This document shows positions 459 to 48,900 of a stretch of 64,000 nt of DNA, one piece after another. The translations under genes and the position numbers were made by a program. Origin of the DNA: Auanema rhodensis (lineage: Eukaryota; Animalia; Nematoda); NCBI GenBank assembly GCA_964057225.1, contig OZ059895.1, positions 8,494,001-8,558,000 of the forward strand. The letters are read 5' to 3'. Positions within the stretch are counted from its first letter, which is position 1. The number at the start of each line of letters is the position of its first letter. The notes under the pieces are model-generated. The model saw only the letters and a program-made list of their open reading frames with translations, had not been told where the DNA came from and did not search any database.

Positions 459-3400
459 GATCATACTCGCCAAGACCGTCGAACATTCAAACATCATACA
501 TTACAAGTTTGTCAGGAAGATGAGAAATGCTCTTCGGTAAGTATGGGGATTGTAATATTATAAATACTTAGATTTTAAAACTGCAGTATATCAACTATTA
601 TTTGAAAAACAACAAGCTTAATAATAATAGAATAATGTGCATTTTCATTTAAATATTCACTTAATCACCATCAGATTATTAGCCAGATCAGCCCAGCTAT
701 ATTGGGTAATGAACAGCAGATTCCAAATGTTCACGCATTGCAACTTTAATATTTGCTTTTCTTATTTGATATGCTGTCATGTGCTGTCTTTCTCAAGCAT
801 CACAGGATCACGTAATCACGTGGATTTGCATATCTTCTGCTGTCTGCCTCTCTCGCTATCTTATGGTTACAATAAGGCTGTCTGTTCCTGACCCATTGTA
901 ACAGATCACAATACTACGTTTAACCAGCATCCTCCCAAAATGGATACATATCTGTCATCATGTCATATAAGGGAAGTGCAAATATCTATGATCCAATGCA
1001 GAATAGCTAAATGAATAGCGAGTATAAACGATTCATAGCTCGAAGAAGGATAAAAATGAGTAATAAGAGTAGAGGGGGTTCAGCATGTAACAGGAAATTA
1101 CCTTAAGTAGAAATAAAAAATAGAAAGTATAACTTAAGAAGATTATATCTATCTATGTATGTATGCACAGATATTACGTATTTATTATAAATGCTTTAAC
1201 AAACAACAATTAACAGATAAGGTCAGGATGAGCACAAGAAGAAGGAGAAGGTATTACAGTTAGCATACCAAAGAGATTAGGATAAATCGCTTTTTACAAA
1301 ATTATTTGTTTTCCTGACTTATTCTTAGCATATCTATGCCATATTCATAGGTTTATGGCATATTTGGATTGTGCCTGCTTGCTAGTATATTCATCGACCC
1401 CTTAACGTTAAGATTTTGCAAATAATGTTTAGCACTTCTGTATTTTAACAATTTCTATATAAGGGATAAAATAAAATAATAAAATGATAGATAATATGAA
1501 GCTTTATAGCTGAAATAGTAAAAATAATGGATTGGAAGAATATTTTGGATTTAAAAACAACGCATTTGTTTATTCATAATTAATCGATTATTTTGACCTC
1601 GATTGGAATAAATTCATTCAATTTCAAAAAACAGGAAATAGCGGTTGTATATAATATTTTCAACATAAAATGATTATCCGTGTATTAATTAAATATTTAT
1701 ATTTCAGTGTCTACTTCCTTGTAAGTATTTTCATTCGCATGATTTCACTACATGTAAAATAGAAGCTTGTCAGGTATTCACTAAATTTTTAGGAAAAAAA
1801 TCTTAATTTATAACAATTATAGACTCAAATTGCAAAAAAAGAATGTGATCGTTCATGTGATTTTCTTCAATATAGTTATATTGAAAAGTTAGGCGATTGC
1901 CCAACAGAAAGCAATTATTCACAATATGTTAGTTATTGAAATATGATTTCTTTAAAAACTTTTATTCTTAAAGGAATGTTCTGCTAGTTGTCACATGGAT
2001 GGTGATTGTTCTGAAACATTAAAATGTTGTTCATATGGCTGTAACCGTCGATGTGTACTACCTTCATATCCTGACAATCTATCGTCAGTTTTGCCCATTC
2101 CTCAAAATTTAACTGTTGAAGAACGGAAAGGAAAGAGGTAATATAAGGGATAAAATAAAATAATAAAATGATGTGCAAATAAATTAGTGTTGTTCACTCA
2201 TAATAATGTTTAGATCAGTCCTGTTAAGATGGGAAATGGGTTCAAATTTAACGCATAGTGTTACGAATTTGTATGTTATTCAGTGGCGATGGAGCTTGCA
2301 TCCTTCTGATTCTTGGACAGAGTGGCAAACAGTTACAACGGTTCAAATTTTAATGACTATATATTTGTAACATTTATTTTATTATTCAGAAATCAAAACC
2401 ATCAGCAATTTTGAAACATCTTGTCTCTGCTGGACGTTATTATCAATTTCGAGTTGCTGCTGTCAATAGTCAAGGCAGTTTAGGTTTTGGCGTTCCCAAT
2501 GAACCATTTAAATTATCCCGAGGTTTCAAAATTTAAGCTTATTATAAATTTAAAAATTAATTTAGAAGTTGAAACTCCGTCTGCACCAAGAGGGTTATCA
2601 TTGGGTGATGTGGAAATGATGAATGGATTATGGAATCAAAAGATTCAATGGACTCAACCTATCAGCGAATTACCTATAAAATCTTATCAGGTTAGTAATT
2701 CTGTGCATGAAAAATAATCTTTGAACCCTGCTTTAGATATTATGGGCACCATCACCCGTCTTAGATGAAGATGCATTTGAAGAATTACTCAAACAAAATT
2801 CTGATTCAGACGACGAAGCTTTCGATGATAAAGCTTGGCTTTTGAATGGAACAGGGTATGCTTTGTTTATATTTAATCTCAACAGTTATTTCATATTATT
2901 CAGAAGCTATCATTTATTTGCTGTACCAGGACACGAAACATTTGCTGAACTTATTGGCCTTTTACCAAATCATTCATATTTTGCGGAGGTTCGTGTTAAC
3001 TTTATGATCTTCTGACTTTATGTTTTTGTTTTAGATTTATGCGGTTGCTGAGTCAGAAAAAGGAGATATTCAAGGAGATAAAAGCATTATATTTTTGAAT
3101 TCTTTGACTAATAGTCAAACGGTATTATTCTCAATTTATAATATTTTTTTGAATTATTTAATTTGTTAGAAAAGTACGGAACCAAGTTTTGCTTCTGAGT
3201 TGAATGTACCTACTGCTGAAATTAAAGAAGAAAGACATGAAATTATAATTGAACCAGCTAACTATGATGGTGGACTTCAAACAACTGTTAGTTGGTGGGA
3301 TTCAAGAATATGTGGTCCAGTTCGAACTAAATACATTGTTCAATTAAAACGAGGAGATTGTCGTGAATATGAGCCCCACCATATTCTAGATAATAAGTAA

Positions 3401-4141
3401 GTTTTTAGATGTTTTTAATTGTATGTTTATGATTATTTAGTTGGAAAGAAACAAAAACTGGCGATTGTGACATGCAATTACAAGGATTATCCTTTGATTG
3501 TGATTATGAAATCTTGGTTACAGACAAGAAAACAGGACAGGTTTGTGACTTATTGAAAAAATGTTTTATCCTATGTTTACAGGCAATCACTAGTCGATTT
3601 GTGACACCTTCCTGCTCTTCTTTGGCAAATGATGCAAAACTGGATTGCTCAGCACTGACTACTCCATTGTTTTGCTCTACTCGACGGCAAACTGTAATTT
3701 GCCACTGGTCTCGCCGATTGGATGATACTACGGAGAATACTGAGGAAAAGAGTAATACGATTGTGGGCTATCGAATTCTGCTGACTTCATCAGCTCAAAG
3801 TCTGAGCAATATCACTATAAATCCTCCTCACTTGCGGGAAGTTCGCTATGAGAAGCTGAAACCATTCGAAGTGTACACAGTAGAGGTTTGTTAATCTTCG
3901 TCGCTTTCGTCATTAATTTATTTTATTGAAGGTTCAATCAATAACGAATCGTGGATTCGGTCGCACTGCATCGGTCAACTTTGTTGCATCATTTGAACAT
4001 TTCTCTAATAACGAGATTATGCAATTCCCCGATGGTCATATGATCGAACTACCTTTGTCGTCATATTCATCATATAGTTATTTCAAATTATATATATTGA
4101 CTATTATTGTTGTTATTAATATAATAAACAACATGTCATAG
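459..4141 (+). CDS. kal-1: Anosmin/KAL-1 homologue (Cys-rich, WAP and FN3 domains, hydrophobic C-terminus), 5'-partial, multi-exon
   Basis: Spliced exons give CLLPCK...ECDRSCDF, a WAP motif ECSASCHMDGDCSETLKCCSYGCNRRC (from 1974), FN3 motifs (YVIQWRW, YYQFRVAAVNSQGSLG, YTVEVQSITNRGFG) and a hydrophobic tail ending in TAG at 4139-4141. The first recognised exon starts at 459; the start codon lies upstream. Confidence 0.88.
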
Positions 4142-4940
4142 TTGCTTATCAATGTGAACTCTTAAGCAGGTGGCACCTCTTCCTTAGCTTAAAGGATAAG
4201 CTCCTCTGATAGTTATGCAATGATTGTGCAACCCTTTGAATAGAGATCCCCAACCAGTTTCATTGACATTTCACATCTTTGAAATATTCACTTCGCTCAT
4301 CAGAGTTCTCTAATTTTTTGAAAATTTCACGTACATCTTAAGATCATCACTATTTATAGATACAAACAAATCTAATCAGTCAGGTCATGCTCCTGGCATC
4401 ACCAAGTTTACGTTTGAGCGGGTTTCATTAGGTTAAATGTTTCAATAATATTTTGTGTTTTATTTCATATTAATATATATAATGTTACTTTTATGTTTTT
4501 CTTTTCTTTTATCTTAAATCATTCCTTTCTTCATTTGTCAAACCTCTGTTTGATATTCTTTAATATATTCACGGGTACTACAATATCTTTAATATTCCAT
4601 CATATTGTATATTTTTCTTAATAATATTCATCTTAATTTTATTTATTTTTATGTGTAAAGCTAAGAAAATTGAATAAAAATTGATATAAATCATATATAA
4701 TTATGTACATTTACTTTCAATATTCTGAAAAACGATACATAGTTCATACACTAACACTTAAAATTCGTCTATCCTCCCTCTTTAGAGCTGATAAGAATTA
4801 TTAAGAGCTATTGATCAAATGCTATCCTATATAATTCATGGTTTCATAGATAAAATTTATTAATTTTATATAAAATTCACGAATTCTTGTATTATTCTCA
4901 TCTTTTTCAGTTTAAACAATAACTTTTCAATCTGAACAGT

Positions 4941-7377
4941 ATGGTCAAGGTTTGTGTTATCGGTGCAGGTGCTGCTGGAATTACTGCAGCTAAGCAAGCT
5001 ATTAACTTTGGTTTTGATGTTAGTATAATTAATAAGATTATACTATCTTAAGCTTGAAATATATTAATAAAACTTCTATTTTAGGTAATAGTTTATGAAC
5101 AAACAGATCAAGTAGGAGGAACATGGGTTTATGATCCAGAACTTACTGCTCATTCAGCTATGTATGAAGTATTATTGTATGTTTAAAATATTTGAAAATC
5201 AAATAATTTTCAAATCTTTTAGAACCAATTCACCAAAAGAAGTAATGAATTATCATGATCAAGATATACAAAAAACATTACCATCATTCATTGGACATGA
5301 AGACATGTTGAACTATTTGATTGATTATGCCAAAGATCTTCCAATTCAATTAGAACATCGTGTTGATTCTGTTGTTCGAGAGGAAAATACATGGAAGGTA
5401 AATAATTTTTTATGAATTATTCTATTAATTATAATAACTTTAAACTAATTATATGTTCTATTATCAAAAAATATTTTAGGTTACTGTTTATCATGCTGGA
5501 AAGAGTGAAACAATTGATTTTGATGTTGTCATGGTATGCAATGGTCACTATTTTTGTCCAAAATATACATTTCCATATGAGAACTTCAATGGTATTTTGG
5601 TTTTAACATAATAATAATAAATAAGAATATTAGGCGCTTTTTCTGTATCTATACGTGAAGAGCGTACTTTTGCGTAGCCCCGCCCCTTTTGCCGTTTGGC
5701 ACTTAATCTTGTTAAAATGTGATAACTATATGAGCTACTAAGGTATCCAGATATCCAGAAATCATTCATTTTTGGTTAAAATTTCCCTTCCATTGTCTTT
5801 TCTGGTACATCTCCACTTATTTCGAGCAACGGAATGACTTATTTGAGGTGTACATCTGTCTTATTCTTTAGTTTCAGGGATTATACCCTTCTCTTGAAAA
5901 AATTGAATGGCATCAGCTTCAGTACGAAGTCGTCCTTTTTAGAGCAAACATTTAGGCGAAATACTGTTGATAATGCAGATGCAATGACCAATAATGATTT
6001 AGTTTTCATATCATAACATTCAAGTTTTATTTTACTTATTATAGCCAATTACCCCGAAACTTTACAGAAGCGTCTGACGGGAGGGAATCCGAATGGGTGA
6101 ATAGTATGCGCCTGACGGCAAAAGGGGTGGGGCTAAAAACGGGTGGCATAGATACGGAAAAAGAACCGAGTATTATTATTATTAATAGGAAAAGTTGTTC
6201 ACAGTAAAGATTATCGAAGAGCTGGAGACTTTATTGATGAACGAATTGTTGTTGTGGGATCAGGTCCATCTGGTATTGATATAGCTTTACAATTATCTAC
6301 AACAGCTCGAGAAGTCAGTTGTTTGAAATACTAAAAATTTAACGAAATAAAAATGATTTTTAGGTTTATTTGGTTGGAAGATTTGCAGAATTTGAAGGAC
6401 TACCAAATAATTTGACGCAATGTCTAACGAAAATTACAGGTAGATCAGAAACTATTAAAATCTTTATTAAGTCATGTTGCTTTTCATTTACATCTAATTC
6501 GATTTATTCATTAAAATTTTACAGAAGCGTCTGATAATCGTGTAATACTAACAGATGGAAATAGAATCGAGAATGTTGATAGCGTAATATCATGCACAGG
6601 ATATGAAATGAAGGTGAAAACTGATCCCAAAATCAATTTTAATTAAATAATTAAATTATAAAACTTTAAATATATACAACTACATGAATGATCATATATG
6701 TTCTCGAATGATCATTGAGATTGGTTTTAGTTTCCATTCTTATCGGATGATCTTGTACAAGTTACTCACGATGGTATGATGGTTAGCCCTTTATGGAACC
6801 ATGTCGTTCATGTCAAATATCCAACAAGTCTTTTCTTCGTAGGTTAGTTAGAATTCAATGAAATAAGAAGAAGGGAAGAAATATAAAATTAATAATTTAG
6901 GAATAAGTTTAGTAAGTGTTACATTACCTTTGTTTGAATATCAAGCACGTCTTGCATTATCATTTATAAATGGGACTGGAATCATTCCAAGTCAGGAAGA
7001 ATTAGAAAATTTTGAAAAGAAAAGACTCGAGTAAGTATTATACAACATAAAAATATTAAAATATCTTTGTACATATAGTAAATAATATTATTTAAGAGAT
7101 TTAATTAAAAGAGGAATGGATGGTAAGGCTTATCATTTGATGAAAGATGATCAATGGGATTATCTTTATGATCTCGCCAAATATGGACAATTTGAACATT
7201 TTACTAATGTTGAGGCAAATTTTAATTTTATAATTTTAAATTTAAATATTGTTTTTTCAGTTTATAAGAGGAATTTATAATTATCTGATTAGCATGCGGA
7301 AAAACATTACAACATATAAAAAAATAAATTTTATAGTTGATGACGAAAAAACTAGTTTTGATATTGTACCCCTATAA
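4941..7377 (+). CDS. Flavin-containing monooxygenase, paralogue A, multi-exon
   Basis: FAD motif MVKVCVIGAGAAG, EQTDQVGGTW, TNSPKEVM, VMVCNGH, FMO motif HSKDYR, NADPH motif VVVGSGPSGIDI, and CTGY. Stop TAA at 7375-7377. Confidence 0.92.
5633..6167 (-). mobile_element. Non-autonomous Merlin (IS1595/ISXO2-related) DNA transposon derivative in an FMO-A intron
   Basis: Absent from the same intron of FMO-B (empty site near 10693). 8-bp target duplication GAATATTA (5625-5632) / GAGTATTA (6168-6175). GG...CC ends with imperfect TIRs (CTTTTTCYGTATCTAT; TAGCCCCRCCCCTTTTGCCGT). Minus-strand remnant RLRTEADAIQFFQEKGIIPETKE* ... RNKWRCTRK resembles Merlin transposase N-termini (recognised from memory). 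Confidence 0.8.
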
Positions 7378-8048
7378 GTAATCCGTGAGGAATATGATGA
7401 TGTTGAAGACAACGATGGCATAGATTATGATGATGATGATGCTGCTGTTACTTATGCTGCTGAAGATGCAGACAACGACAACATAACCTCTGTAGCCACT
7501 ATGATGATTCTAAGATTACATTGTACTAACGGCAGCTATGTTGTTTCACTAGATATTCCATGTAGATGAGGTTATAATCACCGTCATTTTCATCTTTTTC
7601 TATTTTCTTTCTTATTTTCTATTTCTCTAATAAATTGTTTAATTATGTTCTTTTTTCCCATTTTTATCTTACTATATGATGTTTAATTCCTATACAGATT
7701 GACACACACCCTCCCACCCTTATATACACCTCTAATGTACAACCAGCTGGCTTTAATATGTTATTTGGTTGGCAGGCTAGAATTAGTCAAATATTATTTT
7801 TTCCCAAAATTTTCAGTCATTACGAAAATATTTTTTTTCCAATTGTTCCACTACCACTAAACCATTTTAACTTTTATTTTTTCTTGAAATCGATCGATAA
7901 TCGAAAATGAGTGTGAATCAGAGAGAGAGAGACAGAGAGAGAGACAGAGAGTAGAAACAGCGGCTCAAATAATTTATTCATATTTCAAAATTACGTAAAC
8001 GAATCGTTTTAATTATTTTGATCTTGTTTTTATATATTTTCCTTTAAG

Positions 8049-9209
8049 CCTTTGAGAGGAAAAGAAAATAGAGATATTCATGTGATTGATATTTGTGATG
8101 ATAGCTTTTTACATAAAGATGATTATAAAGAAACAAAAAATCCTAAACTAAGCATTATATTTTTGAATTCTTTGACTAATAGTCAAACGGTATTATTCTC
8201 AATTTATAATATTTTTTTGAATTATTTAATTTGTTAGAAAAGTACGGAACCAAGTTTTGCTTCTGAGTTGAATGTACCTACTGCTGAAATTAAAGAAGAA
8301 AGACATGAAATTATAATTGAACCAGCTAACTATGATGGTGGACTTCAAACAACTGGTAGTTGGTGGGATTCAAGAATATGTGGTCCAGTTCGAACTAAAT
8401 ACATTGTTCAATTAAAACGAGGAGATTGTCGTGAATATGAGCCCCACCATATTCTAGATAATAAGTAAGTTTTTAGATGTTTTTAATTGTATGTTTATGA
8501 TTATTTAGTTGGAAAGAAACAAAAACTGGCGATTGTGACATGCAATTACAAGGATTATCCTTTGATTGTGATTATGAAATCTTGGTTACAGACAAGAAAA
8601 CAGGACAGGTTTGTGACTTATTGAAAAAATGTTTTATCCTATGTTTACAGGCAATCACTAGTCGATTTGTGACACCTTCCTGCTCTTCTTTGGCAAATGA
8701 TGCAAAACTGGATTGCTCAGCACTGACTACTCCATTGTTTTGCTCTACTCGACGGCAAACTGTAATTTGCCACTGGTCTCGCCGATTGGATGATACTACG
8801 GAGAATACTGAGGAAAAGAGTAATACGATTGTGGGCTATCGAATTCTGCTGACTTCATCAGCTCAAAGTCTGAGCAATATCACTATAAATCCTCCTCACT
8901 TGCGGGAAGTTCGCTATGAGAAGCTGAAACCATTCGAAGTGTACACAGTAGAGGTTTGTTAATCTTCGTCGCTTTCGTCATTAATTTATTTTATTGAAGG
9001 TTCAATCAATAACGAATCGTGGATTCGGTCGCACTGCATCGGTCAACTTTGTTGCATCATTTGAACATTTCTCTAATAACGAGATTATGCAATTCCCCGA
9101 TGGTCATATGATCGAACTACCTTTGTCGTCATATTCATCATATAGTTATTTCAAATTATATATATTGACTATTATTGTTGTTATTAATATAATAAACAAC
9201 ATGTCATAG
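8049..9209 (+). pseudogene. PITP::kal-1 chimeric partial gene (hybrid exon plus duplicated kal-1 3' exons)
   Basis: Exon 8049-8189 begins with PITP sequence (PLRGKENRDIHVIDICDD...) and continues in frame into kal-1 (SIIFLNSLTNSQT). The downstream kal-1 exons are intact, with one V>G change. No upstream start exon was found. Confidence 0.8.
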
Positions 9210-10008
9210 TTGCTTATCAATGTGAACTCTTAAGCAGGTGGCACCTCTTCCTTAGCTTAAAGGATAAGCTCCTCTGATAGTTATGCAATGATTGTGCAAC
9301 CCTTTGAATAGAGATCCCCAACCAGTTTCATTGACATTTCACATCTTTGAAATATTCACTTCGCTCATCAGAGTTCTCTAATTTTTTGAAAATTTCACGT
9401 ACATCTTAAGATCATCACTATTTATAGATACAAACAAATCTAATCAGTCAGGTCATGCTCCTGGCATCACCAAGTTTACGTTTGAGCGGGTTTCATTAGG
9501 TTAAATGTTTCAATAATATTTTGTGTTTTATTTCATATTAATATATATAATGTTACTTTTATGTTTTTCTTTTCTTTTATCTTAAATCATTCCTTTCTTC
9601 ATTTGTCAAACCTCTGTTTGATATTCTTTAATATATTCACGGGTACTACAATATCTTTAATATTCCATCATATTGTATATTTTTCTTAATAATATTCATC
9701 TTAATTTTATTTATTTTTATGTGTAAAGCTAAGAAAATTGAATAAAAATTGATATAAATCATATATAATTATGTACATTTACTTTCAATATTCTGAAAAA
9801 CGATACATAGTTCATACACTAACACTTAAAATTCGTCTATCCTCCCTCTTTAGAGCTGATAAGAATTATTAAGAGCTATTGATCAAATGCTATCCTATAT
9901 AATTCATGGTTTCATAGATAAAATTTATTAATTTTATATAAAATTCACGAATTCTTGTATTATTCTCATCTTTTTCAGTTTAAACAATAACTTTTCAATC
10001 TGAACAGT

Positions 10009-12076
10009 ATGGTCAAGGTTTGTGTTATCGGTGCAGGTGCTGCTGGAATTACTGCAGCTAAGCAAGCTATTAACTTTGGTTTTGATGTTAGTATAATTAA
10101 TAAGATTATACTATCTTAAGCTTGAAATATATTAATAAAACTTCTATTTTAGGTAATAGTTTATGAACAAACAGATCAAGTAGGAGGAACATGGGTTTAT
10201 GATCCAGAACTTACTGCTCATTCAGCTATGTATGAAGTATTATTGTATGTTTAAAATATTTGAAAATTAAATAATTTTCAAATCTTTTAGAACCAATTTA
10301 CCAAAAGAAGTAATGAATTATCATGATCAAGATATACAAAAAACATTACCATCATTCATTGGACATGAAGACATGTTGAACTATTTGATTGATTATGCCA
10401 AAGATCTTCCAATTCAATTAGAACATCGTGTTGATTCTGTTGTTCGAGAGGAAAATACATGGAAGGTAAATCATTTTTTATGAATTATTCTATTAATTAT
10501 AATAACTTTAAACTAATTATATGTTCTATTATCAAAAAATATTTTAGGTTACTGTTTATCATGCTGGAAAGAGTGAAACAATTGATTTTGATGTTGTCAT
10601 GGTATGCAATGGTCACTATTTTTGTCCAAAATATACATTTCCATATGAGAACTTCAATGGTATTTTGGTTTTAACATAATAATAATAAATAAGAATATTA
10701 TTATCAATAGGAAAAGTTGTTCACAGTAAAGATTATCGGAGAGCTGGAGATTTCATTGATGAACGAATTGTTGTTGTGGGATCAGGTCCATCTGGTATAG
10801 ATATAGCTTTACAATTATCTAAAGTAGCTCGAGAAGTCAGTTGTTTGAAATACTAAAAGTTTAACGGGGGCAGATATTGTTTCGCCCACTCTCCCCCAAA
10901 CAGATTATCATTAGAGCGCATGCGTTTTTTTAGAGCACTCTCTAGTTTATGTGAAGCTGATGCGAGCCCAAAATGTTAAGCGCGCGCTCTAATGTTAACT
11001 CTCTGATGATTGGGGAAGGGAGAGGGTGAAACGCCGTTTAATGAAATAAAAATGATTTTTAGGTTTATTTGGTTGGAAGATTTGCAGAATTTGAAGGACT
11101 ACCAAATAATTTGACGCAATATCAAACGAAAATTACAGGTAGATAAGAAACTATTAAAATCTTTATTAAGTCATGTTGCTTTTCATTTACATCTAATTCG
11201 ATTTATTCATTAAAATTTTACAGAAGCGTCTGATAATCGTGTAATACTAACAGATGGAAATAGAATCGAGAATGTTGATAGCGTAATAGCATGCACAGGA
11301 TATGAAATGAAGGTGAAAACTGATCCCAAAATCAATTTTAATTAAATAATTAAATTATAAAACTTTAAATATATACAACTACATGAATGATCATATATGT
11401 TCTCGAATGATCATTGAGATTGGTTTTAGTTTCCATTCTTATCGGATGATCTTGTACAAGTTACTCACGATGGTATGATGGTTAGCCCTTTATGGAACCA
11501 TGTCGTTCATGTCAAATATCCAACAAGTCTTTTCTTCGTAGGTTAGTTAGAATTCAATGAAATAAGAAGAAGGGAAGAAATATAAAATTAATAATTTAGG
11601 AATAAGTTTAGTAGCTGTTACATTACCTTTGTTTGAATATCAAGCACGTCTTGCATTATCATTTATAAATGGGACTGGAATCATTCCAAGTCAGGAAGAA
11701 TTAGAAAATTTTGAAAAGAAAAGACTCGAGTAAGTATTATACAACATAAAAATATTAAAATATCTTTGTACATATAGTAAATAATATTATTTAAGAGATT
11801 TAATTAAAAGAGGAATGGATGGTAAGGCTTATCATTTGTTGAAAGATGATCAATGGGATTATCTTAATGATCTCACCAAATATGGACAATTTGAACATTT
11901 AACTAATCTTGAGGCAAATTATAATTTTATAATTTTAAATTTAAATATTGTTTTTTCAGTTTATAAGAGGAATTTATAATTATCTGTTTAGCATGCGGAA
12001 AAACATTACAACATATAAAAAAATAAATTTTATAGTTGATGACGAAAAAACTAGTTTTGATATTGTACCCCTATAA
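10009..12076 (+). CDS. Flavin-containing monooxygenase, paralogue B, multi-exon
   Basis: Same exon structure as paralogue A with canonical TNLPKEVM. The last intron is GC-AG (11914-11959). Stop TAA at 12074-12076. Confidence 0.92.
10867..11035. mobile_element. 169-bp MITE with 8-bp TSD and GG...CC ends (Merlin-like) in an FMO-B intron
   Basis: Absent from FMO-A (empty site ATTTAACG near 6337). TSD GTTTAACG (10859-10866) / GTTTAATG (11036-11043). Inverted arms GTTTCGCCCACTCTCCCC / GGGAGAGGGTGAAAC and CATTAGAGCGC / GCGCTCTAATG. Confidence 0.8.
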
Positions 12077-13896
12077 GTAATCCGTGAGGAATATGATGAT
12101 GTTGAAGACAACGATGGCATAGATTATGATGATGATGATGCTGCTGTTACTTATGCTGCTGAAGATGCAGACAACGACAACATAACCTCTGTAGCCACTA
12201 TGATGATTCTAAGATTACATTGTACTAACGGCAGCTATGTTGTTTCACTAGATATTCCATGTAGATGAGGTTGTTGATTCTCAAAGACAATGCTAGGCTG
12301 TGAGTGTCGTTGTCAACGTCGCTGTGGCTGAAAAACTCGAGGTCGTTACCCTCCCGTTTCCTTCCATTTTCTCTACCGACTAACCAATTTTCCCGCCAAT
12401 TTCTTCTGTTTTACAGTTCACATTGGTCGGTAATAGCCTTATATTATCTGTACATCGTTTGAATGTATTCTTTTATCATTTTTCCTTCTTTGTCATCATC
12501 TTCGTCATCAGTATTCAGCAATATATTCGTTATTACTTTCTTAGCTTATATTCTTTTGTAACATTTTTCCTTCTGACATCATAATCACCGTCATTTTCAT
12601 CTTTTTCTATTTTCTTTCTTATTTTCTATTTCTCTAATAAATTGTTTAATTATGTTCTTTTTTGCCATTTTTATCTTACTATATGATGTTTAATTCCTAT
12701 ACAGATTGACACACACCCTCCCACCCTTATATACACCTCTAATGTACAACCAGCTGGCTTTAATATGTTATTTGGCTGGCTGGCTTGAACTAGTCAAATA
12801 TTTTTTCCCAAAATTTTCAGTCATTACGAAAATATTTTTTTTCCAATTGTTCCACTACCACTAAACCATTTTAACTTTTCTTTTTTCTTGAAATCGATCG
12901 ATAATCGAAAATGAGTGTGAATCAGAGAGTAGAAATGGCGGTTCAAATAATTTATTCATATTTCAAAATTACGTACTTAAAAAAAAACAAAATTAGATGT
13001 ATTTGAACAATTTTTTTGAAATAACACTTCCGTTCCTATCGTCAGCTTAATATATTATGAAATATATATAAGAAATGAAAAACTTTATTGTTAATACTCC
13101 GTTGGTTTTAAAAGAATTCCTCCTTGTTGGTCAATACATTTATTTGCCCTGATTCTAATAAGTACGTGGTACTAACTCGAACATGCGAATCATATTCATT
13201 TTCAAGTTTAGTAGGTTTTTCATTTTTTTTTCTAGATCAATATGGTTGGGGGGATGAATAACATTCAAAGACGAGAACTGTCGATGAGTTTAAGTGGAAA
13301 ATATATGTTCAAGAGTAAAGGAAATGTCAGATCTGAAAGGTTACAAAGATTGTTCTAAGAAATTTATTTTAAAGTTTTCGTTACATCCATATATGTACTC
13401 AATTCGTTGCTCTTCTAACTTATTCTCATTGAATTCAAGCATGATTTACTTTTCTTTTGTCAGTTTTTCTATTTTAAAAGCTTAGCCGCTGATCTCCTTT
13501 TTTTGGGGAAAAGCTGATTCCAAAATGAATGATCATTTCTTTTTTTTTAGGAAAAAAAGATTGCTATCGGCAAGAACTTGCTGAAGACAGATTTGAATAG
13601 TTGATACGGTGAACGTCGACAAGACTGAGACCCCACGACACCGAGACATCGACAGCCGTCGCTAGCTGACGAAGAAGAACACAACGACGTTAACGACGAG
13701 ATTTCACCGTCTTATCGTCGTCGTCCGTTGTACGCGGAGTTTTGGAACGCTGTCGTCATCGTTGTCTCCACTCCCTAACGTTTAAGAGTAGACAACTGCT
13801 ATTTCCAGTCATTTGGATCTTCTTCCTTCCAGTGCAGCCGTCCAACACGTGGGTTCAAGAAGATAAGGAGAATTCTCACAAAGACATCATTCCAAG

Positions 13897-15526
13897 ATGG
13901 TTATAACAAAGGTTAGTAAAGAATCTTTTTTATATTTCGTTACTAGAACATACTATTTGCTTGTTTGAATTCTTTTTATTATTTAATTTTTACATATTCT
14001 ATTCTATTATATTCTATTCTGTACATACTATTCCATAATTTTGCTTATATTTCAATATTTTTCAAACTTATTACTTATGAATTCTTCTGTTATTTTGAGT
14101 TTTCGATCAACTCTTTACTTTTATCTTAATGGATTATTTCTTCAATTCTCCCTAGTGTCCATTCTAGGACGATAAAAATCGTATGAAGCCAGATATGAGC
14201 GGCGACTCGATGAATACTAGAACCGGTAGGCTGTCAAATGAAGATGAAAAGCCAATGAAAAAATTTAATCTCTGACTTTGTAAAATACATTTTCAACCAT
14301 TGTGTTTGTAATTTTATTCCAATTTTTGCGTATTCAGGAGTTTCGGATTAAAATGCCGATGACGGTTGATGAATTCGAAAAAGGTCAACTTTATGCTGTT
14401 GCACATTGTAGCAAAAATGAGACTGGGGGTGGTGAAGGGGCTCAGGTAATATCAGCCAAAAAATATATTGAGTTATGAAATTTCTTTTAGTTCTTAAAAC
14501 AAGAAGATTTTAGTTCTGATGATTTGATTCCTGGACAAACTGTGTCAGGTACTTATACATATAAATTATATAAACTACGATCAAAAGCACCATGGGTTTT
14601 ACAAAAGGTTTGATCTAGTTTGAATGCGAATCGTTTTTAAATTATTATTTTCTTATCAGTTGTTACCAGCTGAGGCTTTTGAAGTTCATGAAGAAAGTTG
14701 GAATGCATATCCATATTGTAAAACAGTTATTACGGTTAGTTATAATACTATATATATATAGTATTAACAAGTTTATATATAGAATCCTGGCTATATGAAA
14801 GATAATTTCAAAGTTATAATAGAATCATTACATCTAGATGATAATGGAACATCTTCAAATGTAAAAATTATTATTTTAATTTTAATTTTAAATATTTTCC
14901 TTTAAGCCTTTGAGAGGAAAAGAAAATAGAGATATTCATGTGATTGATATTTGTGATGATAGCTTTTTACATAAAGATGATTATAAAGAAACAAAAGATC
15001 CTAAAATATTCAGGTAAATCATTCACTTTTTAAAGTTTTTTCTTCATAACAATACAAATTCTACTAATTCTACTAATTATTTTATATTTTAAGGTCTGCA
15101 ATCACTGAACGTGGCCCATTAAAGTCAAATTGGGAAAATACCACAAACCCCGTTAGTTTTCACTTAAATTTAAATAAATTATTTATATTTTTAAAGGTTA
15201 TGTGTGCTTATAAGTTAGTGACAGTTCACTTTAAATGGACAGGAATAGGTAATTTGGTTGAAAAATCGATAGTAAAGCAATATCCACGAATTTTTGGAAA
15301 ACTTCACAGGTATTTTCCTCTTCCAAACGATTATTTTTCATTTTTGAACCATTCTTCTAGAGAATGTTGGTGTTGGATAGATGATTGGTATAACATGTCA
15401 ATGTCTGATATTCGAAATATGGAAGAGAAAATTGCTGAAATATTACGTGGGCAAATTCTAGAAGCTGATCGACGTGGTACAACATGTAATGATTCAGCAG
15501 ATTCAAGAACAGGAGAACGAGCTTGA
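13897..15526 (+). CDS. Class I phosphatidylinositol transfer protein (PITP), multi-exon
   Basis: MVITK|EFRIKMPMTVDEFEKGQLYAVAHCSKNETGGGEG, EESWNAYPYCKT, MCAYKLVTVHFKW, CWIDDWYNMSMSDIR. Stop TGA ends at 15526. Confidence 0.93.
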
Positions 15527-18695: not shown

Positions 18696-25422
<6,727 letters not shown>

Positions 25423-29100: not shown

Positions 29101-31428
29101 GACACCAGAATATAATAACTTTGTTGAATCTCTTTATCTGGTAAGCATAATCTAGAAATATTAGAAGAATTTGTTATACTTTAGGCTTGCTTATCAACCT
29201 TGTGGGAAACATCAAGTTCTACTCTTCTTTTCCGAAGTTTAGTTGTTCATAAACAATTCTCGACTTTGAAGGTTTGAAGATAATTTTTACATTATTAAAA
29301 TTTCTTTCTGTATTTAGAAGCTTTGTGTACTTCATATTAGCCCACCTCTGCATCTATTGAATATTGTTCGGTTTTATTCTGCTGTAGCTTATTCTGGAAT
29401 AGGACAACCTGTTAAGGTTTGTGAAAAATATGTATTATGTGAACATACAACTTATACTTTTAGGCTATGACAGCATTTATTGAAGCTTCTTCTGGCGTTT
29501 CGTCTCAATCTCCAGCCATGATTAGAGCCTTGAAAGCTTTATGCAATGTTCGAGAAGATATTTCTCTTGGAGACTATTACACTATGGTATACAAGTAGAA
29601 ATGAGAATAGTTTGTTTATATATGTATTATAGACAATCAGCTTCCTTAGTGATCATGGTCATAGTGAAGAAGTTGTTGAGATGTCCAGAAAAGCTATTGA
29701 GCAACTTCCAGAAGGAAACGAAAGTACCAGTCGAATTTACGCAACGCTGTTCAATCATTTGGTTAATAAATGCAATTGGGTTGACGCTTTGAGTACAATT
29801 CAAAAGAATAAGGTAAATCATTAAGTTCTTTTAGATTTTTATAATTATTACTGTTTAAGAACACCGAAGACAGACGTCTTACTCTTCGTGACTTTATTAC
29901 TCGCTTGCTTCATGCTAAGGAATATAAAACATTGGTAGAGTTACGATATGGAGAATTAGAGGACAATGTAAATCTTTACTTTTTCAAATCAATTTTGTTT
30001 TTTTTCTTAAGGTTGAAGACATCTTATTAGCTGCAGCTCGATCTCAAGATGTTCATGCTAATCCTCATCTGTTTGAAATTGTCTTCTCTTATTATACTTT
30101 CAAGTCTGATTTTGCTAAAGGTTTGTTTCTGAGTCTTGCTGATGTATCAGTTTAATATTTATATTCAGCTGCTCATTCTATGTATGAATATGCTGTATAC
30201 CTTAGCCAAGTAACTCAAACTCCAGAGTTATTAAGACGAAGAAGGGATGCGATTGCAATCGCTTCTGCTTCTTTGGATCTACTTCCAGCCTCGGATCGAT
30301 TTTTATGGTTCCCTGAAGAAGTAAGTTTATCACCCTGGTTTTTTTCTATATTTTCTTTCACAGGTTGCTGAAATTGACTATGATCTTACTGATAATATGA
30401 ACCTTCGCAATGTACCAGATGATCAAGTTCCTATTATTAAGAGACGGAAAATTCGAATGCTATCTGCTAAAGAGTATACAAATCACTTCAAATATTCATT
30501 AGAAAATTTATTTTTTTAGTAATTGTGATGAATTTATTATCGCGAATGCTAGGGTCGCTTTGATGGCAAATGGTAAGATTCCACCAACTAATCCTGCGGA
30601 TATCTTAGCTGATCTTATTGCTTCGAAAGAATTCGACTTGGCTTTTGAAGTGTGCATGTAAGTATTCCTTATTGTCCCAAATTCGAACGTTATTTTAGAA
30701 ATTGTGATGTGCAACCTTATGATCTCTTCTTCGCTTTAGCGAAAGAGTCAATCATTTTAGATATTCAACAACCAACTATCTTACCTGATTGGCTTCATAA
30801 GAACAGAAGATATACAGAAGGAAAGTTTGTGGGGTTAGTTTCGTTGACCCTATTTCATCCTCTGGTTATGTTCATTTAAAGGGATAATTGGTCGGTAGCA
30901 ACTGGACTTCTCGCCGCAGCTAGAAAAGTCTGGCCTGCCGATTCAAGACCATACAGAGCAATGACAAATGCCGTTCTTAGTCATGGTCTCAATATCCCTT
31001 GTTGGCTACAAACAGAATATGCGGTAATTTGTCAATTAATTGTTATTATTATGAAGAATTGTTTTAGGATTTTGATATTTCTGATTACGTTCGTTGCTTG
31101 CTTGACTTTAACTGTTTACCTACAGCTCTAACAATCCTTTCTGATTACATAGGACGAGAAACCGATAAAGTATTATATAAATTAGTCAGTTAACTTATAT
31201 ATTTATGTTTTAGGTGAAATCCGCTGAAGAACGAACATGGCTACCATATACAGTTATAGATGAAATATTAAAAGTTTCTGTAAAACCCGAAATGAAGGAG
31301 GTATAATTTTGCTTGGTGAAAATTACTTAAATCTTTGTTTTCAGCTTGTATTAAGGCTCAATGAACGACTACGAGTTTATAAATCTAGAATAAGCTCTTT
31401 TGAAACAGCTGCAAGATTTGCCTTATAA
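26185..31428 (+). CDS. npp-6: Nucleoporin Nup160 homologue, multi-exon
   Basis: N-terminal SAGVF...DRFLLWR...KLYLEERSL, HRDCHLRVW, later helical region (AAHSMYEYA, WLPYTVID). Stop TAA at 31426-31428. Family assigned by motif recognition, supported by adjacency to slx-1. Confidence 0.78.
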
Positions 31429-31649
31429 GGACACCGGTATTTCGACTATTTTAATTTAACTTTAACTATTCATTGTCTGAAACATGCTTGTTTTCACTTG
31501 TTGTTCTTTAAATTGTTATTTTTTGTGATCTTTGTATGAATCTCATTTCGTACTGCATTCCATAATATTTATTTGAAATTTTTGGTTGAGCCCAATATCT
31601 TTTTTTCTGTTTAATTTTTAAAATCTAATTCTTCTGTAGATCAGATGCA

Positions 31650-33058: not shown

Positions 33059-33215
33059 ATATTGTTTTAACACTAGCCTTTAATTTTTTATTATGCAATA
33101 ATCCTTGTGATATACGATTTCAATCATTTCTTCTTTTTTTTTCAATTCGGTTAATTGCCGTTATTTATTTGTTTTATACAAAAATTTGTTTTAAATATTG
33201 AGCTTTGTCTACAGA

Positions 33216-33465
<250 letters not shown>

Positions 33466-33987: not shown

Positions 33988-34567
33988 ATGACTCGTAAGT
34001 CTTTTTTTTTATTTTTTGGTATTGATTTGGTTTCTGTTGAGGTGGAAATCAGCGTGATTTGGCTCGTGAAAAGAACCTTAAGAAGGCTGCTGATGCTAAG
34101 AAGAAGGCTGGTGCTAACCAGAAAGAGGGAAATAGTGTATGTCTCGAAGTATTTTTCTATCCTTTATAGAATCTCTAAGCTACATATACAACATATTTTG
34201 AAGATATGCTACTCGAGTTAAGATTTATGTTTTTTTTCTTTTTTTTTGCTTTCTTATGTGTGGTATCCTTGTTACCACAAAATCTTGATATACATGTATT
34301 CATTAAAAAAGTAGATATTATAAGAAAACAACAATTAAAACAATTTTCATAAGAATGCTTGGAAAAGATATTTGACTGATTTTATAAGTTTTCTTAGTCA
34401 TTTCTCATTTTTCTATTTAGGGTCTCTCTACTGATCAACGAATGAGTAGGGATGCTGAAGTAATGAGAATAAAACAACAAAAAGCTCTGGAAAAGAAGGA
34501 ACAGGAAAATGCTGCTAATGCTGCAAATGCTAAGAAAGTTGCCAAGATTGATCCTCTGAAAATGTAA
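33988..34567 (+). CDS. moag-4: SERF/4F5 family protein (modifier of aggregation)
   Basis: MTRGNQRDLAREKNLKK...RMSRDAEVMRIKQQKA...NAKKVAKIDPLKM*, with introns 33995-34041 and about 34137-34420. Confidence 0.95.
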
Positions 34568-41392: not shown

Positions 41393-44286
41393 ATGTGGAG
41401 TAAGATAACTTCTCATTTGGGTATGTTATAACATTTCTTTTTAGTTTCTCTTTTAGCTAATTACTCTTTTTATTTTGTCAATAACTTGTTGTTTCTGAAA
41501 CTTTATCACATTGTTGAAACCATTAAACTAATTACCAGTTATCAGGAGAGTTTTCTGTCTTTCCACAAAAAGAAAATTAAGTTTTGAGCTTTTAGGCACG
41601 CCCAAAAACTGAACATCTGCCATGTTTCTCGTTAAAATTTTGTCTGCCTTGTCTCAACTTCTTTTTCTTTTTGTGTACTCAGCTAACTAATGCTATGTAT
41701 ATCCAATACTTTTTTCTTTTCCAACCACAAAGCAGCAGTAGTTCCTGAATAAGAAATAAATAGATTTCTAATCGCTAATGCTTCATTAACTTTAGGGCTC
41801 TGGTTGGGCTTGGACGAATCAGATCGCCCTATCCGTTCCTCTTGTTCATTATCTATGCTTCATAACGCTCAACTCAATGTAATACGACCATCAAAAAGTT
41901 CTGAAAATCTTCACAAAATTAATATTAATGGTTCTTCTACAATGGCTTGCAACTCCAAACGACAACAGACTCAATCGCCGCAGCAGTCTCATCACACGAG
42001 TAAGGTCAGTAGCTGTATATCTTCTATCTATGAATTCTATACATGTCTTAGCTACTTAGTAGTTTTCTTTATTTGAATTATTGGCTCTATATACAAGAAA
42101 AGTAATGAAATTTGAATTAACTGGAAGAAATTTATTATAAATTTTCTTTCTTTTCTTTCTACTTTTTTTCTCAAAAAATTATATACATTTACGCCAATAT
42201 TACGTTTAAAATAACTTTGATATCAAGAAACTGGATTATATTGTTTTATTATAAATTTAATTTCAGAGCTCACTTTTTACTTTGAGGCGTAGTCGAAATA
42301 AGGAAAAAAAGGGCAAAAATAATGGTATAGTTTTGTACTCTATAGTAATTAAGTTGTTACCAAAGTAAAGGAAATTACTAAATTTTCTTAATTTCCCCTT
42401 AGAAATGTTAGAAAAGACTTTTCGAATGATCTTTCAACATATATTTAGTTTTTAAGTCTTAAAGTTAAAAATATTATTTTACCTTTCATTTAAATAATAT
42501 TTGGATTCAGATATAGGATCTAAGTTACCCGAATCAATGACACAATCATGGCATAGTCAAGCTAATGGACATCATTCAACAACAGCTCAAAATGCTAGCA
42601 AACATATTTTAAATTTTTTACGGTAATGAGAATATTTAATATTTAAGAAGAAATTATTTATTTTTAGAAATCGTTCTCGTTCTAATAACGCTAATTCTAA
42701 TGAATCTATTGTTGTTTCACGAACTGTTGTAGCACCTTCATGCCCTAGTTCAACAACCGTAGCTGACTTTTCACATTTGAGACGAAGACGTCCTCGTTCT
42801 GCACATTATGAGCCAAATAGTATATCTTTACCAAAAGAGGTAACATAAGCTACATGTATGAAACAAACTTTAAATAATAATTTTCTTAAGGATTTTCCAA
42901 CTCATAATGTGAATGAACTATATGAACGTGTGGAAAAACTAGGAGAAGGCAGTTATGCAACTGTTTTTAAATGTCGTTCAAAGTATATTTCTTTTTATTT
43001 AAAATATTTATTTATTTATTTATAATAGAGTTGATGGATCAATAGTTGCTTTGAAAGAAATTAAATTACAATTCCAAGAAGGTTTACCATTTACAGCTAT
43101 AAGAGAAGGTAATTTTTCTAAACTTTGTATTATTTAATATGAATATTTAATATATTTCTTTAATTTTTATTCATTTTTTTCTGATTTCGTATGGTTTCAG
43201 CTTCTCTATTACGAACACTGCGTCATGCCAACATAGTCTGCCTTCACGACATTTTTTTACAACATAATCAACTCACATTTGTGTTTGAATATATGGTAAT
43301 TCATTTTTTCTTTCTTTGTTCATTGTTCATTTTAAATTTTTTTAGAAAATGGATTTAAGCAAGTATTTGGAAGTACACCCAACTGGCTTAGATAATTTTC
43401 AAACCAAACTGCTATTGTTTCAACTTCTACGTGGTTTAGATTTTTGCCATAAAAAGAAAATTTTACATAGGTACTCTTAATTTATTAATTGAACATATAA
43501 ATATAAAAATATTTTTAAGGGATTTAAAACCTCAGAATTTATTATTAGATAATGAAGGCGTTTTAAAATTAGCAGATTTCGGTTTAGCTAGGGCAAAATC
43601 AGTTCCTAGTCGCACATATTCAAACGAGGTTACATTTATTTTTATTCTTTTCTAAATAAGTTTGTAATTTAGGTTGTAACGTTATGGTATCGACCTCCTG
43701 ATGTTTTACTTGGAAATACTGATTATACAACCTCATTAGATATGTGGTAACTTTTGAACAAAACAAGTTTTTTGTCTTAACTTTCCCATTCTAGGGGCGT
43801 CGGCTGCATTTTTGCAGAGATTTGTACTGGACAAGCCCTCTTCCCGGGAACACGGGACGTCTCTGATCAACTACAAAGAATTTTTGCTGTTCGTGGAATG
43901 CCTAATCAAAGGCGATGGCCGGAGGTAATTTCTTTCGTTTAAAAATTTTATTGATATCGACTTCAGGTTATAAAGCTTTCTCATTATTCTCTTTTAACTC
44001 GGATGGCACCTTATTGGGAAGTTCCTTTTACGGAGGTTAATCAACAACTTGAAAAGTTGCAAAAGAACGGACTTGAGCTGTTATCTATGTTTCTTCAGGT
44101 ATAATCGTCTATTTTATAAAATATTACCATTATCTAATTAATTTTCAGCTTCGTCCAGATGACAGACTCTCAGCTGCTAGTGCTATGCTTCATCCATATT
44201 TTTCAAATTTACCTCGACCTATTCATCTTTTGCCACCAACTCAATCAATCTATTGTCTTCAAGAGTTACAACCTCTATACAGATGA
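41393..44286 (+). CDS. PFTAIRE-type cyclin-dependent kinase (CDK14/15-like), multi-exon
   Basis: [65 protein letters not shown]. Stop TGA at 44284-44286. The start at 41393 ([10 protein letters not shown]) is inferred from splice phase and is less certain. Confidence 0.9.
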
Positions 44287-45967: not shown

Positions 45968-48900
45968 ATGACATTCGGGTGGGCTCTTCTGCTCACCCTG
46001 CTACCATTGGCAATCATTGCCAATGAGCAGTTTCCTGATGATCATACAGATTTAGTATTTGAAAATAAAGGTAAAATCTATATATATACTATACATATAG
46101 TTAAATATATTTTATAATTTAAGTTAAATATGAAAGTCATTTACAATCATTTGATACTCCTCTTCATTTTATTGCTGCAAATGAAACCAATTTAGTTCCT
46201 TTAACTATTAGGTAATTATTATTTTTATTTTGTTTTTTATTTTATTTTTAAATTCTTAGAAATGCTCGACGTAAACGTTGTTCTTGTGGATGTTCTGGTT
46301 GTGATATATTCCCTAGTAGAACATGTTGTACAAGTTGTAAGTTATTGTATCTTGAAACTGTATAATCAATGGTTAACCTCTCTTTAGCTTGCTGCTCATC
46401 AGAGCCGCTGCCATTAGCTTGTTGCCCTCCACCACCTCCACCTAAACCTTGCTGTCAACCTGCATTTGGACCATGCTGTCCAGCAACTCCTCAATGTTGT
46501 CCTCGTCCTTGTTGTCGGTATGATTCTTAGACACGACTACGGTATGAAATATTTTGTTTTAGTGGACGTCGTCCTGAGTATGAAGAGTATGAAGATATTG
46601 AAGAAGAGATTCAACGACCATCAGGTGAAGGTCCACCAGCTCCAACTAGTTCTCCGCGTAGTTGCTGTCCTCCAGCTGTTCCTCCTTCTCCTCCTCCACC
46701 ACCTCCTCCACCTCCACCACCACCAGAGCCACCAGTTCAGTGTTGTGGTGGCCAAAAAGAGCCTCGAACTGGATGTCAAAATAAGAATGGATGCCAAGGA
46801 GGAGGTAAAACTTTTTTTTTTTCATTAAAGCAAAATAATAATTATTGTAGATTGTGGATGTGGCCGTCCATGCTGTTACTATAGAAATCCATCATGCTGT
46901 GATCAAATAACAGGAATTCAGAAGCCATGTTGTCCTCCAGATCCACCCCCACTTCCACCTCTACCATGTTGTCCAGAGATTGCTCTTCCCCAAATAGGAT
47001 GTTTGGCTACTGTTCCACCTTGCCTAAGGTACATAAATATCCTATAATATATATTTTATTATAATTCTTATAATTATATAGAGCTTGTCCCACTTGTCCA
47101 TGCCGTAAGCGTTTGATGCTGGGAGCTCGTTCAAAGCGTGATTCTAATCTTCATTGTCAGCCACGTGAGTTACATTAGAATATATTAAGTAATAGTTAAT
47201 TTCACGTAATTTAAATTATAATTTTTTTTTTTCAAAACAATTACAAAACGGTTGATTTTTATTAAAATTATATTTTATTATTAATAATAATATAATATTT
47301 CAGATATAACTAAAATATATAAGAAGGTTTATGTTAAAGCAGCTGGAGCTAAGACTGCTCTGCCATCTGTACATACAGAACAACATACACCTACAGTATG
47401 AATATTTTATTTTTTTAATTATAGTTAATTATACTTTTATAGTTTGATGTACCACGAGCTGGACGTTTATATGAAGAACATAGAGCTCATCGTGTTAAAC
47501 GAGCAGGATGTGGTGTTTGCATAAATGGAAAACGAATTCTTAAACGAGCAAAACGATCATTAGATTGTGTTAGGTAATTTACTATATAATATATTAAGCT
47601 ATAACTATAATATATAATTATTTAGATGTTCTTATTTACAACCACAATATTCTGAGAATAATCCTCTACTTCCTGATAGAAGTCCAACATCTCCAGTTGG
47701 TGTACCACTTAAACGTGAAAAACGTGATACAGTAATAGACTTTATTCTTTAATTTATATATTTTATATAATATATTTAGTGTTTACCACATCCACAATGT
47801 ATGTTACAAACACGTCGTTATAAAAGAAATTTGTTGGGATCTCAATACTGTGAGCCATGTCAAGGATACTATGGACGTAAGAAACGTGAAGCAGAAATTG
47901 ATGTTTGTAAAAAGTTATGAAAACAAATAATTTCTAAATCTATTCAGCAATGTCATAGAGAACGTCAAAAGAGAGATACTACTTGTGAAGTAGATGAATT
48001 CATGGTAAATCGTATGAAACGTCAAGCATACAACCCACAAGGATTATTAGATATCGTTAAAGTATTATCAAAGACAGTAGCATCTGAAGGTATAATTTCA
48101 TAAAATATAATATCTATAATCATATATTTCTATTACAGGGGCAAGTGGATGTATGAAGTTCCCAGCATGTGTTTTAGCTCAAAAACGTAGAAGAAAGCGT
48201 CATGTTGAACGTGTTGAACAATATCATAAAGTAATCTATAATTATTATAATTATAATTAATTATAATATTATAATTCTAGTCTGTACGAGAATATCAACA
48301 AGCTCTTGAAGATCATAAAGTATTAGTAGAAGAACATGCAAGAGTGAAAAGACAATTTTTCGCTCCTGATAATGCTGGAGGATGTGTTCCATGTCCAGCA
48401 TGGGTTACAATGGCATTGGCTAGCAGAAAGAAGCGTGATGATAGCGAGGTAATTCGATTTACAAGTTGCTTCACTGATATCATATGATTATAGGAAAGAC
48501 ATATGACTCTAAAAGAAGCAATTTCTGATATTCGTCGACATAAAGGCTATGAAAGAGGATTTGGAGTGCGTTTCATTCGAGTAAAATAAAATTTAAAAAA
48601 ATTATTTAAGAATAATGATGAATCACCACGTCGAAGACAACGTTGCGATCAAACAGAAGATTGTTTGAATGAAGTTGAATATGCTATATTCCAAAAAGTT
48701 TATCATAAAAGAACTAAAAGAGATGTAAATAACAAATATTATATTTATAAATAATCTATAATTATTCTGATTATAGGCTGTATTCAGAAGAAAGAAATGT
48801 GAACGATGTGGTTCTGGTTTTAATGGTCGACGTACTAAAAGAGCTTTTGGTGGTCCTCTTATTAATGCATCTGAGGTATTATACTATATTCTATTATATA

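Follow-up and report, generated by a model that had tools for sequence, protein, structure and literature searches.

The textbook example of a very tight 3' splice site is that of Caenorhabditis elegans, UUUUCAG/R, which is read by U2AF. In this type of site the acceptor is bound by the two proteins UAF-1 and UAF-2 (PMC4889670, PMC1557818). Two other described systems bear on how strictly position -3, the base before the AG, is read. In the S34F/Y mutants of human U2AF1, discrimination at -3 is lost except against G (PMC7505975), and, according to the summary of Ragle et al. (2015) given in PMC4889670, C. elegans also has upstream alternative 3' splice sites that have no U2AF65 site and are chosen by position. 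Here we consider the acceptors of Auanema rhodensis in a window, by which we mean a whole 64,000-nucleotide stretch of DNA (assembly GCA_964057225.1, contig OZ059895.1, positions 8,494,001 to 8,558,000 of the forward strand; G000:C3:8494001-8558000 in our labels, from a genome totalling 180,911,798 bases). It has a G+C content of 30% and holds the EGFR gene let-23 together with kal-1, FMO, PITP, npp-6, a kinase gene and a Cys-rich gene. A first-pass annotation had listed 22 introns ending in AAG in these genes and had proposed that -3 discrimination is relaxed in this lineage. Judged from the sequence, AAG is a real intron end here, found in about one tiny intron in five.

The Auanema acceptor exhibits considerable similarities to the C. 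elegans-type site, but there are also significant differences. A run of U abuts the AG, the U at -5 is the best conserved position after the AG itself (T 0.82 in the acceptor matrix of the caller described below, with 0.65 at -6 and 0.62 at -4), and +1 is a purine in 0.74 of cases (A 0.37, G 0.37). As in C. elegans, introns are short (modal length 43-48 nt), there is SL1 trans-splicing, uaf-2 stands beside an RRM-cyclophilin gene, and there is no branch-point consensus, no 5-mer towards the 3' end of the introns being conspicuous as a possible branch point. However, the U run is shorter here and mixed with A, the sequence upstream of it being mixed A and T, and C is not predominant at -3 (about 21%, against about 56% U and 18% A). 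Acceptance of A, C and U at -3, with G rarest, is similar to the specificity of the human S34F/Y mutants (PMC7505975), but Ser34 and its pocket are wild-type here, and the pattern is fixed in the species and present in all sampled genes.

The coding region of let-23 (19800..25422, + strand), which on the basis of spliced alignments and an open frame is taken to begin at the first intron with homology support and to end with the stop codon, was modelled with our own protein-to-genome spliced aligner, in which GT..AG is the sole splice rule, each intron carries a fixed cost and a minimum of 30 nt, and -3 is unscored. The guides were the LET-23 proteins of H. bacteriophora, P. tenuis, P. fissidentatus, C. 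brenneri, A. viteae, S. hermaphroditum and Auanema sp. JU1783, the six from outside Auanema having been retrieved by a search with one kinase exon. Each of the 22 AAG coordinates of the first-pass annotation falls on the G of a plus-strand AAG and has a GT donor, and the nine in let-23 (20441, 21153, 21775, 22776, 23232, 23862, 24510, 24669 and 25001) were all recovered without -3 scoring, each of the six non-Auanema proteins placing acceptors at these positions. The JU1783-guided model has 34 introns, 20 ending in TAG, nine in AAG and five in CAG; all have GT..AG ends, and their removal restores frame and homology. Taking out 33 introns (the remaining one, the first, precedes the chosen CDS start) leaves a single uninterrupted frame that ends in VEVESCL and a stop codon. 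The earlier tally of 35 introns agrees with this model for TAG and AAG, but the sixth CAG that it counted could not be located. Without AAG acceptors the alignment score is lower by 261-262, about 29 per intron, while the penalty per intron for a ban on TAG is about 26 and on CAG about 24; a ban on GAG costs nothing. Furthermore, JU1783 LET-23 (P0158) has 35 introns on its own locus, of which 34 are matched: all 34 window introns lie at the same residue as a JU1783 intron (one of them within one residue), and 33 share its phase, 25081-25126 being the one that differs.

The nine AAG introns of let-23, all on the + strand, are 41 to 54 nt long, and the cost of masking each acceptor varies widely. 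The first is 20388..20441 (54 nt, GTTAGT...AAG, phase 1), with a masking cost of 13 and a counterpart at JU1783 residue 166 that has the same phase and ends in CAG. It is followed by 21105..21153 (49 nt, GTTAAT...AAG, phase 1; cost 15-32; JU1783 residue 333, TAG) and 21727..21775 (49 nt, GTAAAT...AAG, phase 0; cost 48-66; residue 481, CAG). The intron 22736..22776 (41 nt, GTAATA...AAG, phase 0) is the sole AAG site of let-23 with a near-equal rival by score, namely 22698-22756 ending in TAG (drop 1-2); 22776 is preferred because the orthologous JU1783 intron, which ends in CAG, shares its residue (700) and phase. Next come 23184..23232 (49 nt, GTAAGA...AAG, phase 0; cost 7-30; residue 796, CAG) and 23815..23862 (48 nt, GTGAGC...AAG, phase 0; cost 12-14; residue 942, TAG), for which some alignments choose donor 23800. 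Two introns interrupt the kinase domain: 24468..24510 (43 nt, GTTTGT...TTGAAG, phase 0; cost 30-33; residue 1099, CAG), where splicing joins TFGL to SPYP as read directly from the sequence, and 24623..24669 (47 nt, GTAAGT...AAAAG, phase 1; cost 28-33; residue 1136, TAG), whose removal restores the Cys codon preceding WVVNPESRP. The last, 24958..25001 (44 nt, GTTTGT...AAG, phase 0; cost 11-21; residue 1219/1220, TAG), has an alternative donor at 24943, but its acceptor is certain.

To go beyond one gene, an expectation-maximisation caller was applied to GT..AG pairs, combining flank coding potential, intron composition, donor and acceptor matrices and length, with -3 excludable from the score; the sample comprised the window, 15 arbitrarily chosen 10-kb loci and five 3-kb loci, about 230 kb. 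In the let-23 region its acceptors agree with the homology model at 30 of 32 sites, the exceptions being the true first intron and an ambiguous last one. Over the whole sample, -3 is T in 55-58%, C in 20-22%, A in about 18% and G in about 4% of introns, and excluding -3 from the score gives A 0.195, C 0.215, G 0.04 and T 0.55 (about 140 introns). The A fraction is 0.16-0.18 without let-23 and 0.26 in the 10-kb and 3-kb loci alone (about 43 introns). Among calls with a posterior of at least 0.9 (n=123), 71 end in TAG, 25 in CAG, 22 in AAG and five in GAG. The AAG share is about equal to the CAG share in this sample, and let-23 is not special: its 26% (9/34) does not differ from the 16% in the rest of the sample (p 0.21), and the excess of AAG over CAG that had been claimed for this gene, although present in the counts (nine against five), is a sampling fluctuation (binomial p 0.42). 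Intron interiors contain A at 0.38-0.41, C at 0.055-0.074 and G at 0.05-0.06, and the ratio of -3 frequency to this background is 2.75 for C, 1.19 for T and 0.48 for A.

Other ways of calling introns were rejected. Structural calling relied on open frames flanking GT..AG, optionally combined with coding scores, a must-splice rule and a GC filter; it did no better than decoy dinucleotides, since every pair close to a true intron is accepted. Restriction to strong donors left only 23 unique introns, too few to use. The numbers of the caller on the JU1783 locus, which is GC-richer, were discarded; 12 of 15 agreed with homology, and an implausible 10 GAG were called. GAG acceptors may be real at a few per cent. 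A few high-scoring introns ending in GAG occur in the window at 33995-34041 (+), 25806-25859 (-) and 53362-53428 (-), and the JU1783 PITP intron at L029:5886-5930, the ortholog of window 14446-14490, also ends in GAG.

The AAG sites claimed outside let-23, in kal-1, FMO, PITP, npp-6, the kinase and the Cys-rich gene, also stand, on orthologous introns, Pfam continuity, scoring and frame logic, and homology supports 15 of the 22 listed sites overall. Exon pieces of the window were compared one by one with the syntenic JU1783 locus (L029), where acceptors 3931, 7096, 14906 and 15093 each have an orthologous GT..AG intron exactly at the projected boundary. Five sites (1973, 14906, 30011, 42890 and 48610) have a posterior of 1.0 when scoring ignores -3, and three (29859, 30881 and 46123) are the sole frame-compatible AG at a workable distance. 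In kal-1 (anosmin), the intron 1928..1973 (+, 46 nt, GTTAGT...AAG, phase 0) precedes a WAP-type Cys-rich exon, and 3886..3931 (+, 46 nt, GTTTGT...TTGAAG, phase 0) lies within the fn3 domain, as its profile indicates; the ortholog of the latter is L029:893-934 (GTATGT..TAG), and JU1783 alignments extend to the exon ends. The FMO intron 7031..7096 (+, 66 nt, GTAAGT...AAG, phase 2) has an ortholog, L029:3419-3464, that also ends in AAG. Both the kal-1 fn3 intron and the FMO intron recur in a tandem copy, with ends at 8999 and 11795.

Three AAG introns belong to PITP. The intron 14861..14906 (+, 46 nt, GTAAAA...AAG, phase 0) separates stretches 100-124 and 134-162 of the IP_trans profile, and its ortholog L029:6298-6344 ends in CAG, as does L029:6452-6499, the ortholog of 15014..15093 (+, 80 nt, GTAAAT...AAG, phase 2). 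The third, 15152..15196 (+, 45 nt, GTTAGT...AAAG, phase 0), gains an orthologous JU1783 intron once its donor is set to 15152; this ortholog (L029:6556-6684, 129 nt, TAG) has stop codons. The IP_trans profile resumes at 183 with residue 1 of the exon after 15196, the exons being contiguous on the profile. Within PITP, the introns 15152-15196 and ~15311-15360 are both in frame and stop-free, so that a 149-codon frame is open across both; annotation based on ORFs would overlook introns of this sort.

In npp-6 (Nup160-like), 29968..30011 (+, 44 nt, GTAAAT...AAG, phase 0) is the high-posterior site, and the other two follow from frame logic: at 29813..29859 (+, 47 nt, GTAAAT...AAG, phase 0) the other AG (29834) would give a 22-nt intron, and at 30834..30881 (+, 48 nt, GTTAGT...AAAG, phase 2) the acceptor is the sole AG past an in-frame stop, with 30825 as a possible donor. 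The Ser/Thr kinase gene (CDK-like) contains 42840..42890 (+, 51 nt, GTAACA...AAG, phase 0) and 43471..43519 (+, 49 nt, GTACTC...AAG, phase 2). The latter had been described as forced by the catalytic motif HRDLKP, and it is: the intron splits the Arg codon of this motif, with stretches 84-121 and 123-160 of the Pkinase profile contiguous around it. In the Cys-rich gene, the introns are 46071..46123 (+, 53 nt, GTAAAA...AAG, phase 1), where the upstream TAG at 46100 would give a 30-nt intron and a stop, and 48566..48610 (+, 45 nt, GTGCGT...AAG, phase 0). Two further putative AAG acceptors that had not been listed, those of 56957-57013 and 57091-57130 (+), fall in one gene.

For comparison, let-23 of five other species was examined by exact alignment of each species' own protein, giving 147 introns of this one gene. 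The counts are CAG 14, TAG 1, AAG 2 and GAG 0 in C. brenneri; CAG 44, TAG 4, AAG 2 and GAG 1 in P. fissidentatus; CAG 12, TAG 11, AAG 2 and GAG 0 in A. viteae (intron GC 0.25); CAG 11, TAG 9, AAG 2 and GAG 0 in P. tenuis; and CAG 20, TAG 5, AAG 4 and GAG 3 in C. auriculariae. AAG therefore accounts for 12/147 (8%). In JU1783 it accounts for 5/35 introns of let-23 and 4/14 of neighbouring genes, together 9/49 (18%), at an intron GC of 0.36, and the two Auanema genomes differ from the five others (31/172 against 12/147, p 0.013). In the strongylid P. tenuis and the filarial A. viteae, UAG and CAG are about equally acceptable too (T ratio 1.1-1.3, C ratio 2.5-3.8) and A. viteae shares the AT-rich introns; however, their introns are 200-300 nt long rather than about 45 nt, and AAG makes up 8-9% (2/22 and 2/25) rather than about 18%. 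A literature search found no paper on AAG acceptors in Auanema or other nematodes.

The base at -3 is also not conserved between orthologous introns. Only 14 of 48 orthologous pairs of this genome and JU1783 have the same base, against 15.7 expected by chance, and AAG is kept as AAG in one of 14 orthologous introns. This would mean that -3 drifts freely among U, C and A under a shared stationary preference, the ratios to background in JU1783 being C 1.93, T 1.05 and A 0.66. Measured against intron composition, -3 carries about 0.2 bits of information in this genome and in JU1783, 0.84 in A. viteae and 1.3-1.5 in C. brenneri and P. fissidentatus. Relative to Caenorhabditis and Pristionchus, what has mainly changed is that a strong preference for C was lost, rather than that A is specially accepted, and AT richness mainly turns C to U at -3, adding some A. 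The proposal of relaxed -3 discrimination accordingly survives in a qualified form: the low information content, the AAG share of about 18% against 8% and the lack of conservation bear it out, but discrimination is weakened, not abolished, and is specific neither to this species nor to let-23.

Taken together, these are most probably ordinary U2-type GT..AG introns in a lineage that has lost most of the constraint at -3, so that weak selection for C over U over A and an AT-rich composition set the outcome, a reading to which we give a probability of roughly 0.7. In 104-108 of 123 introns (85-88%) splicing uses the first AG whose end lies at least 36-40 nt beyond the donor, in agreement with the earlier suggestion that these introns are defined by length. 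Few AG of any kind fall within 10 nt upstream of the acceptor (six in 1,107 positions), while they are not rare at 11-30 nt. Per 100 positions, AAG is depleted in that last stretch to 0.18 from 1.54 and TAG to 0.09 from 0.81, and this similar depletion suggests that an AAG close upstream of the acceptor would compete as a splice site. Because the introns are tiny and splicing hardly ever passes over an AG that lies at a workable distance, position and the U run would identify the site and -3 would add little. The acceptor keeps its C. elegans-type layout, with a short U run abutting the AG, the -5 U, the +1 purine and no branch-point consensus. Weak selection at -3, which would follow from definition by position, would rank C over U over A, and the strong AT bias of the introns, with C at about 5-7% and A at about 38-40%, would then yield about 56% UAG, 21% CAG, 18% AAG and few GAG. 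The splicing machinery itself would be essentially unchanged. What is seen is a loosening of ordinary nematode splicing, quantitative and clade-wide in that it is shared with JU1783, and not a new mechanism.

Several points weigh against this reading. The twofold difference in AAG is only modestly significant (p 0.013-0.06), and the comparison covers one gene in five species, with the JU1783 figure coming from 49 introns only. Preferences of the P. tenuis type, applied to the composition of this genome, give 13% AAG, which was judged not clearly different from 18%. In addition, every junction is deduced from frame, homology and orthologous gene models that are themselves predictions, and the genome-wide figure comes from about 230 kb and a home-made statistical caller.

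A more radical and rather improbable version would have the ~45-nt introns of Auanema measured by a ruler: the first AG to lie more than about 36-40 nt beyond the 5' splice site, and roughly at least 10 nt past the branch region, would be picked, with almost no reading of -3 and the U2AF35 pocket intact. If such a ruler exists, 3' splice site choice would be largely independent of the base preference of U2AF35, as if the germline sites that C. elegans chooses by position had become constitutive, and Auanema would be a natural system separating branch-site positioning from acceptor reading. The parallel, as far as the account of those sites in PMC4889670 goes, is that an AG is used for its place relative to the branch region and not for a flanking consensus, but they form a small germline-enriched class beside a consensus site, whereas in Auanema a weak flanking sequence is usual at constitutive introns.

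Composition by itself, with the usual nematode preferences kept and AAG a passive result of extreme AT richness in the introns, is an unlikely explanation. It draws on the AT-rich interiors, on the fact that A is still about twofold under-represented at -3, and on the P. tenuis let-23 preferences just mentioned, which predict A 0.13, C 0.195 and T 0.67. However, JU1783 introns are much less AT-rich and have an equal AAG share, and from the preferences of A. viteae, which is equally AT-rich, one would expect 9.7% AAG and 30% CAG, against 22 AAG and 25 CAG observed among 123.

A change in the machinery, such that an altered -3 pocket of U2AF35 (UAF-2) or a second-step factor lets AAG bind like UAG, had been put forward as the possible cause and appears very improbable. 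The S34F/Y-like use of A, C and U favours it. In the structure of S. pombe U2AF23 with RNA, His29, Cys33, Ser34 and Arg35 surround -3, and Arg32 touches -3A via its main chain (PMC7505975). The predicted UAF-2 was aligned exon by exon with a single reference, U2AF23, the contacts being taken from that same study; at the -3 pocket, GACRHGEKCSRTH of UAF-2 aligns with GACRHGERCSRKH of U2AF23. R32K is the sole difference among the named -3 pocket residues, and it need not matter because the Arg32 contact is a main-chain one. The two proteins are identical at Phe20, Cys27, Arg28, His29, Cys33, Ser34 and Arg35 and, with CRQHE likewise unchanged, at Arg150, Gln151 (human Q157), Cys163, Asn164 and Phe165, R159K being the sole contact change there. 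R32K and R159K, both conservative, are thus the only contact changes, although there are also non-contact changes beside the pocket (K36T, V38H and K39I). With the S34 and Q157 equivalents and the -3 pocket kept, an S34F/Y-type change is excluded in the predicted protein, and the comparison gives no support to UAF-2 as the cause, although a subtler alteration of UAF-2, or one of UAF-1, Prp8 or Slu7, would be compatible with it. The persisting ranking of C over U over A also argues against an altered pocket.

The uaf-2 gene was found by the motif FCNFMH on contig C4 (locus L004); the motif's other match (L005) lies in a repeat and is due to chance. With the U2AF35 motif GACRHGDRC, degenerate DNA patterns gave no match because the worm has GEKC, and a zf-CCCH family scan was not specific. 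A gene with RRM and cyclophilin domains adjoins uaf-2 on its 3' side on the same strand (L004:758-3016; G000:C4 ~14294350-14296600), the same gene pairing as in the uaf-2/cyp-13 operon of C. elegans.

Finally, errors of splicing by hand that inflate AAG in AT-rich sequence are a most improbable source of the pattern: in introns of this composition a randomly chosen NAG would be AAG about 40% of the time, 22776 has its near-equal TAG rival and several donors are ambiguous, but JU1783 intron positions match at 14 of 22 sites (with phase at 13), profile continuity holds, masking costs are high, and the observed AAG share of 18-26% is well below 40%.

The loosening of -3 has practical and comparative consequences. 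Gene finders and hand annotation in Auanema must allow AAG, some GAG and in-frame stop-free introns such as 15152-15196; failing this, exons would be shifted or introns read through. Furthermore, textbook-tight C. elegans and a fairly close rhabditid with a drifting -3 and apparently unchanged U2AF35 contacts form a natural contrast, which can be used to ask which factor imposes the C preference of Caenorhabditis.

The Auanema affinity of the genome is supported by the closest LET-23 found, that of JU1783 (64% identity, against at most 50% for the other nematodes compared in this way), and by the kal-1/FMO/PITP/let-23 order, which is identical in the window and the JU1783 locus. Another protein, P0157, was rejected as the protein of the studied species at an identity of just 33%. 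A tandem duplication of about 5 kb (window 3082-7800 and 8150-12806, 97-99.8% identity) holds the 3' part of kal-1 and FMO, and is either recent or an assembly artefact; kal-1 and FMO are single gene calls in the syntenic JU1783 locus. The JU1783 annotation has, at L029:1-1135, a single 1,161-residue product that combines UDP-glycosyltransferase, WAP, fn3 and anosmin Ig domains, which is probably two adjacent genes merged by the gene finder.

The SL1 spliced-leader 22-mer has about 3,450 genomic copies, far above the roughly 110 of C. elegans, largely in tandem arrays of about 252 and 341 bp. These arrays are located at G000:C3:6741531-6766485 and from C3:14134320 onward (L001-L003). They may be part of the repeated non-coding RNA loci that an A. 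rhodense preprint, which also reports RNA-seq for this species, places in eliminated DNA (bioRxiv 10.64898/2026.08.27.747507). Contig C2 of the same assembly is just 11,383 bases long; it may represent an organelle or else an unplaced repeat.

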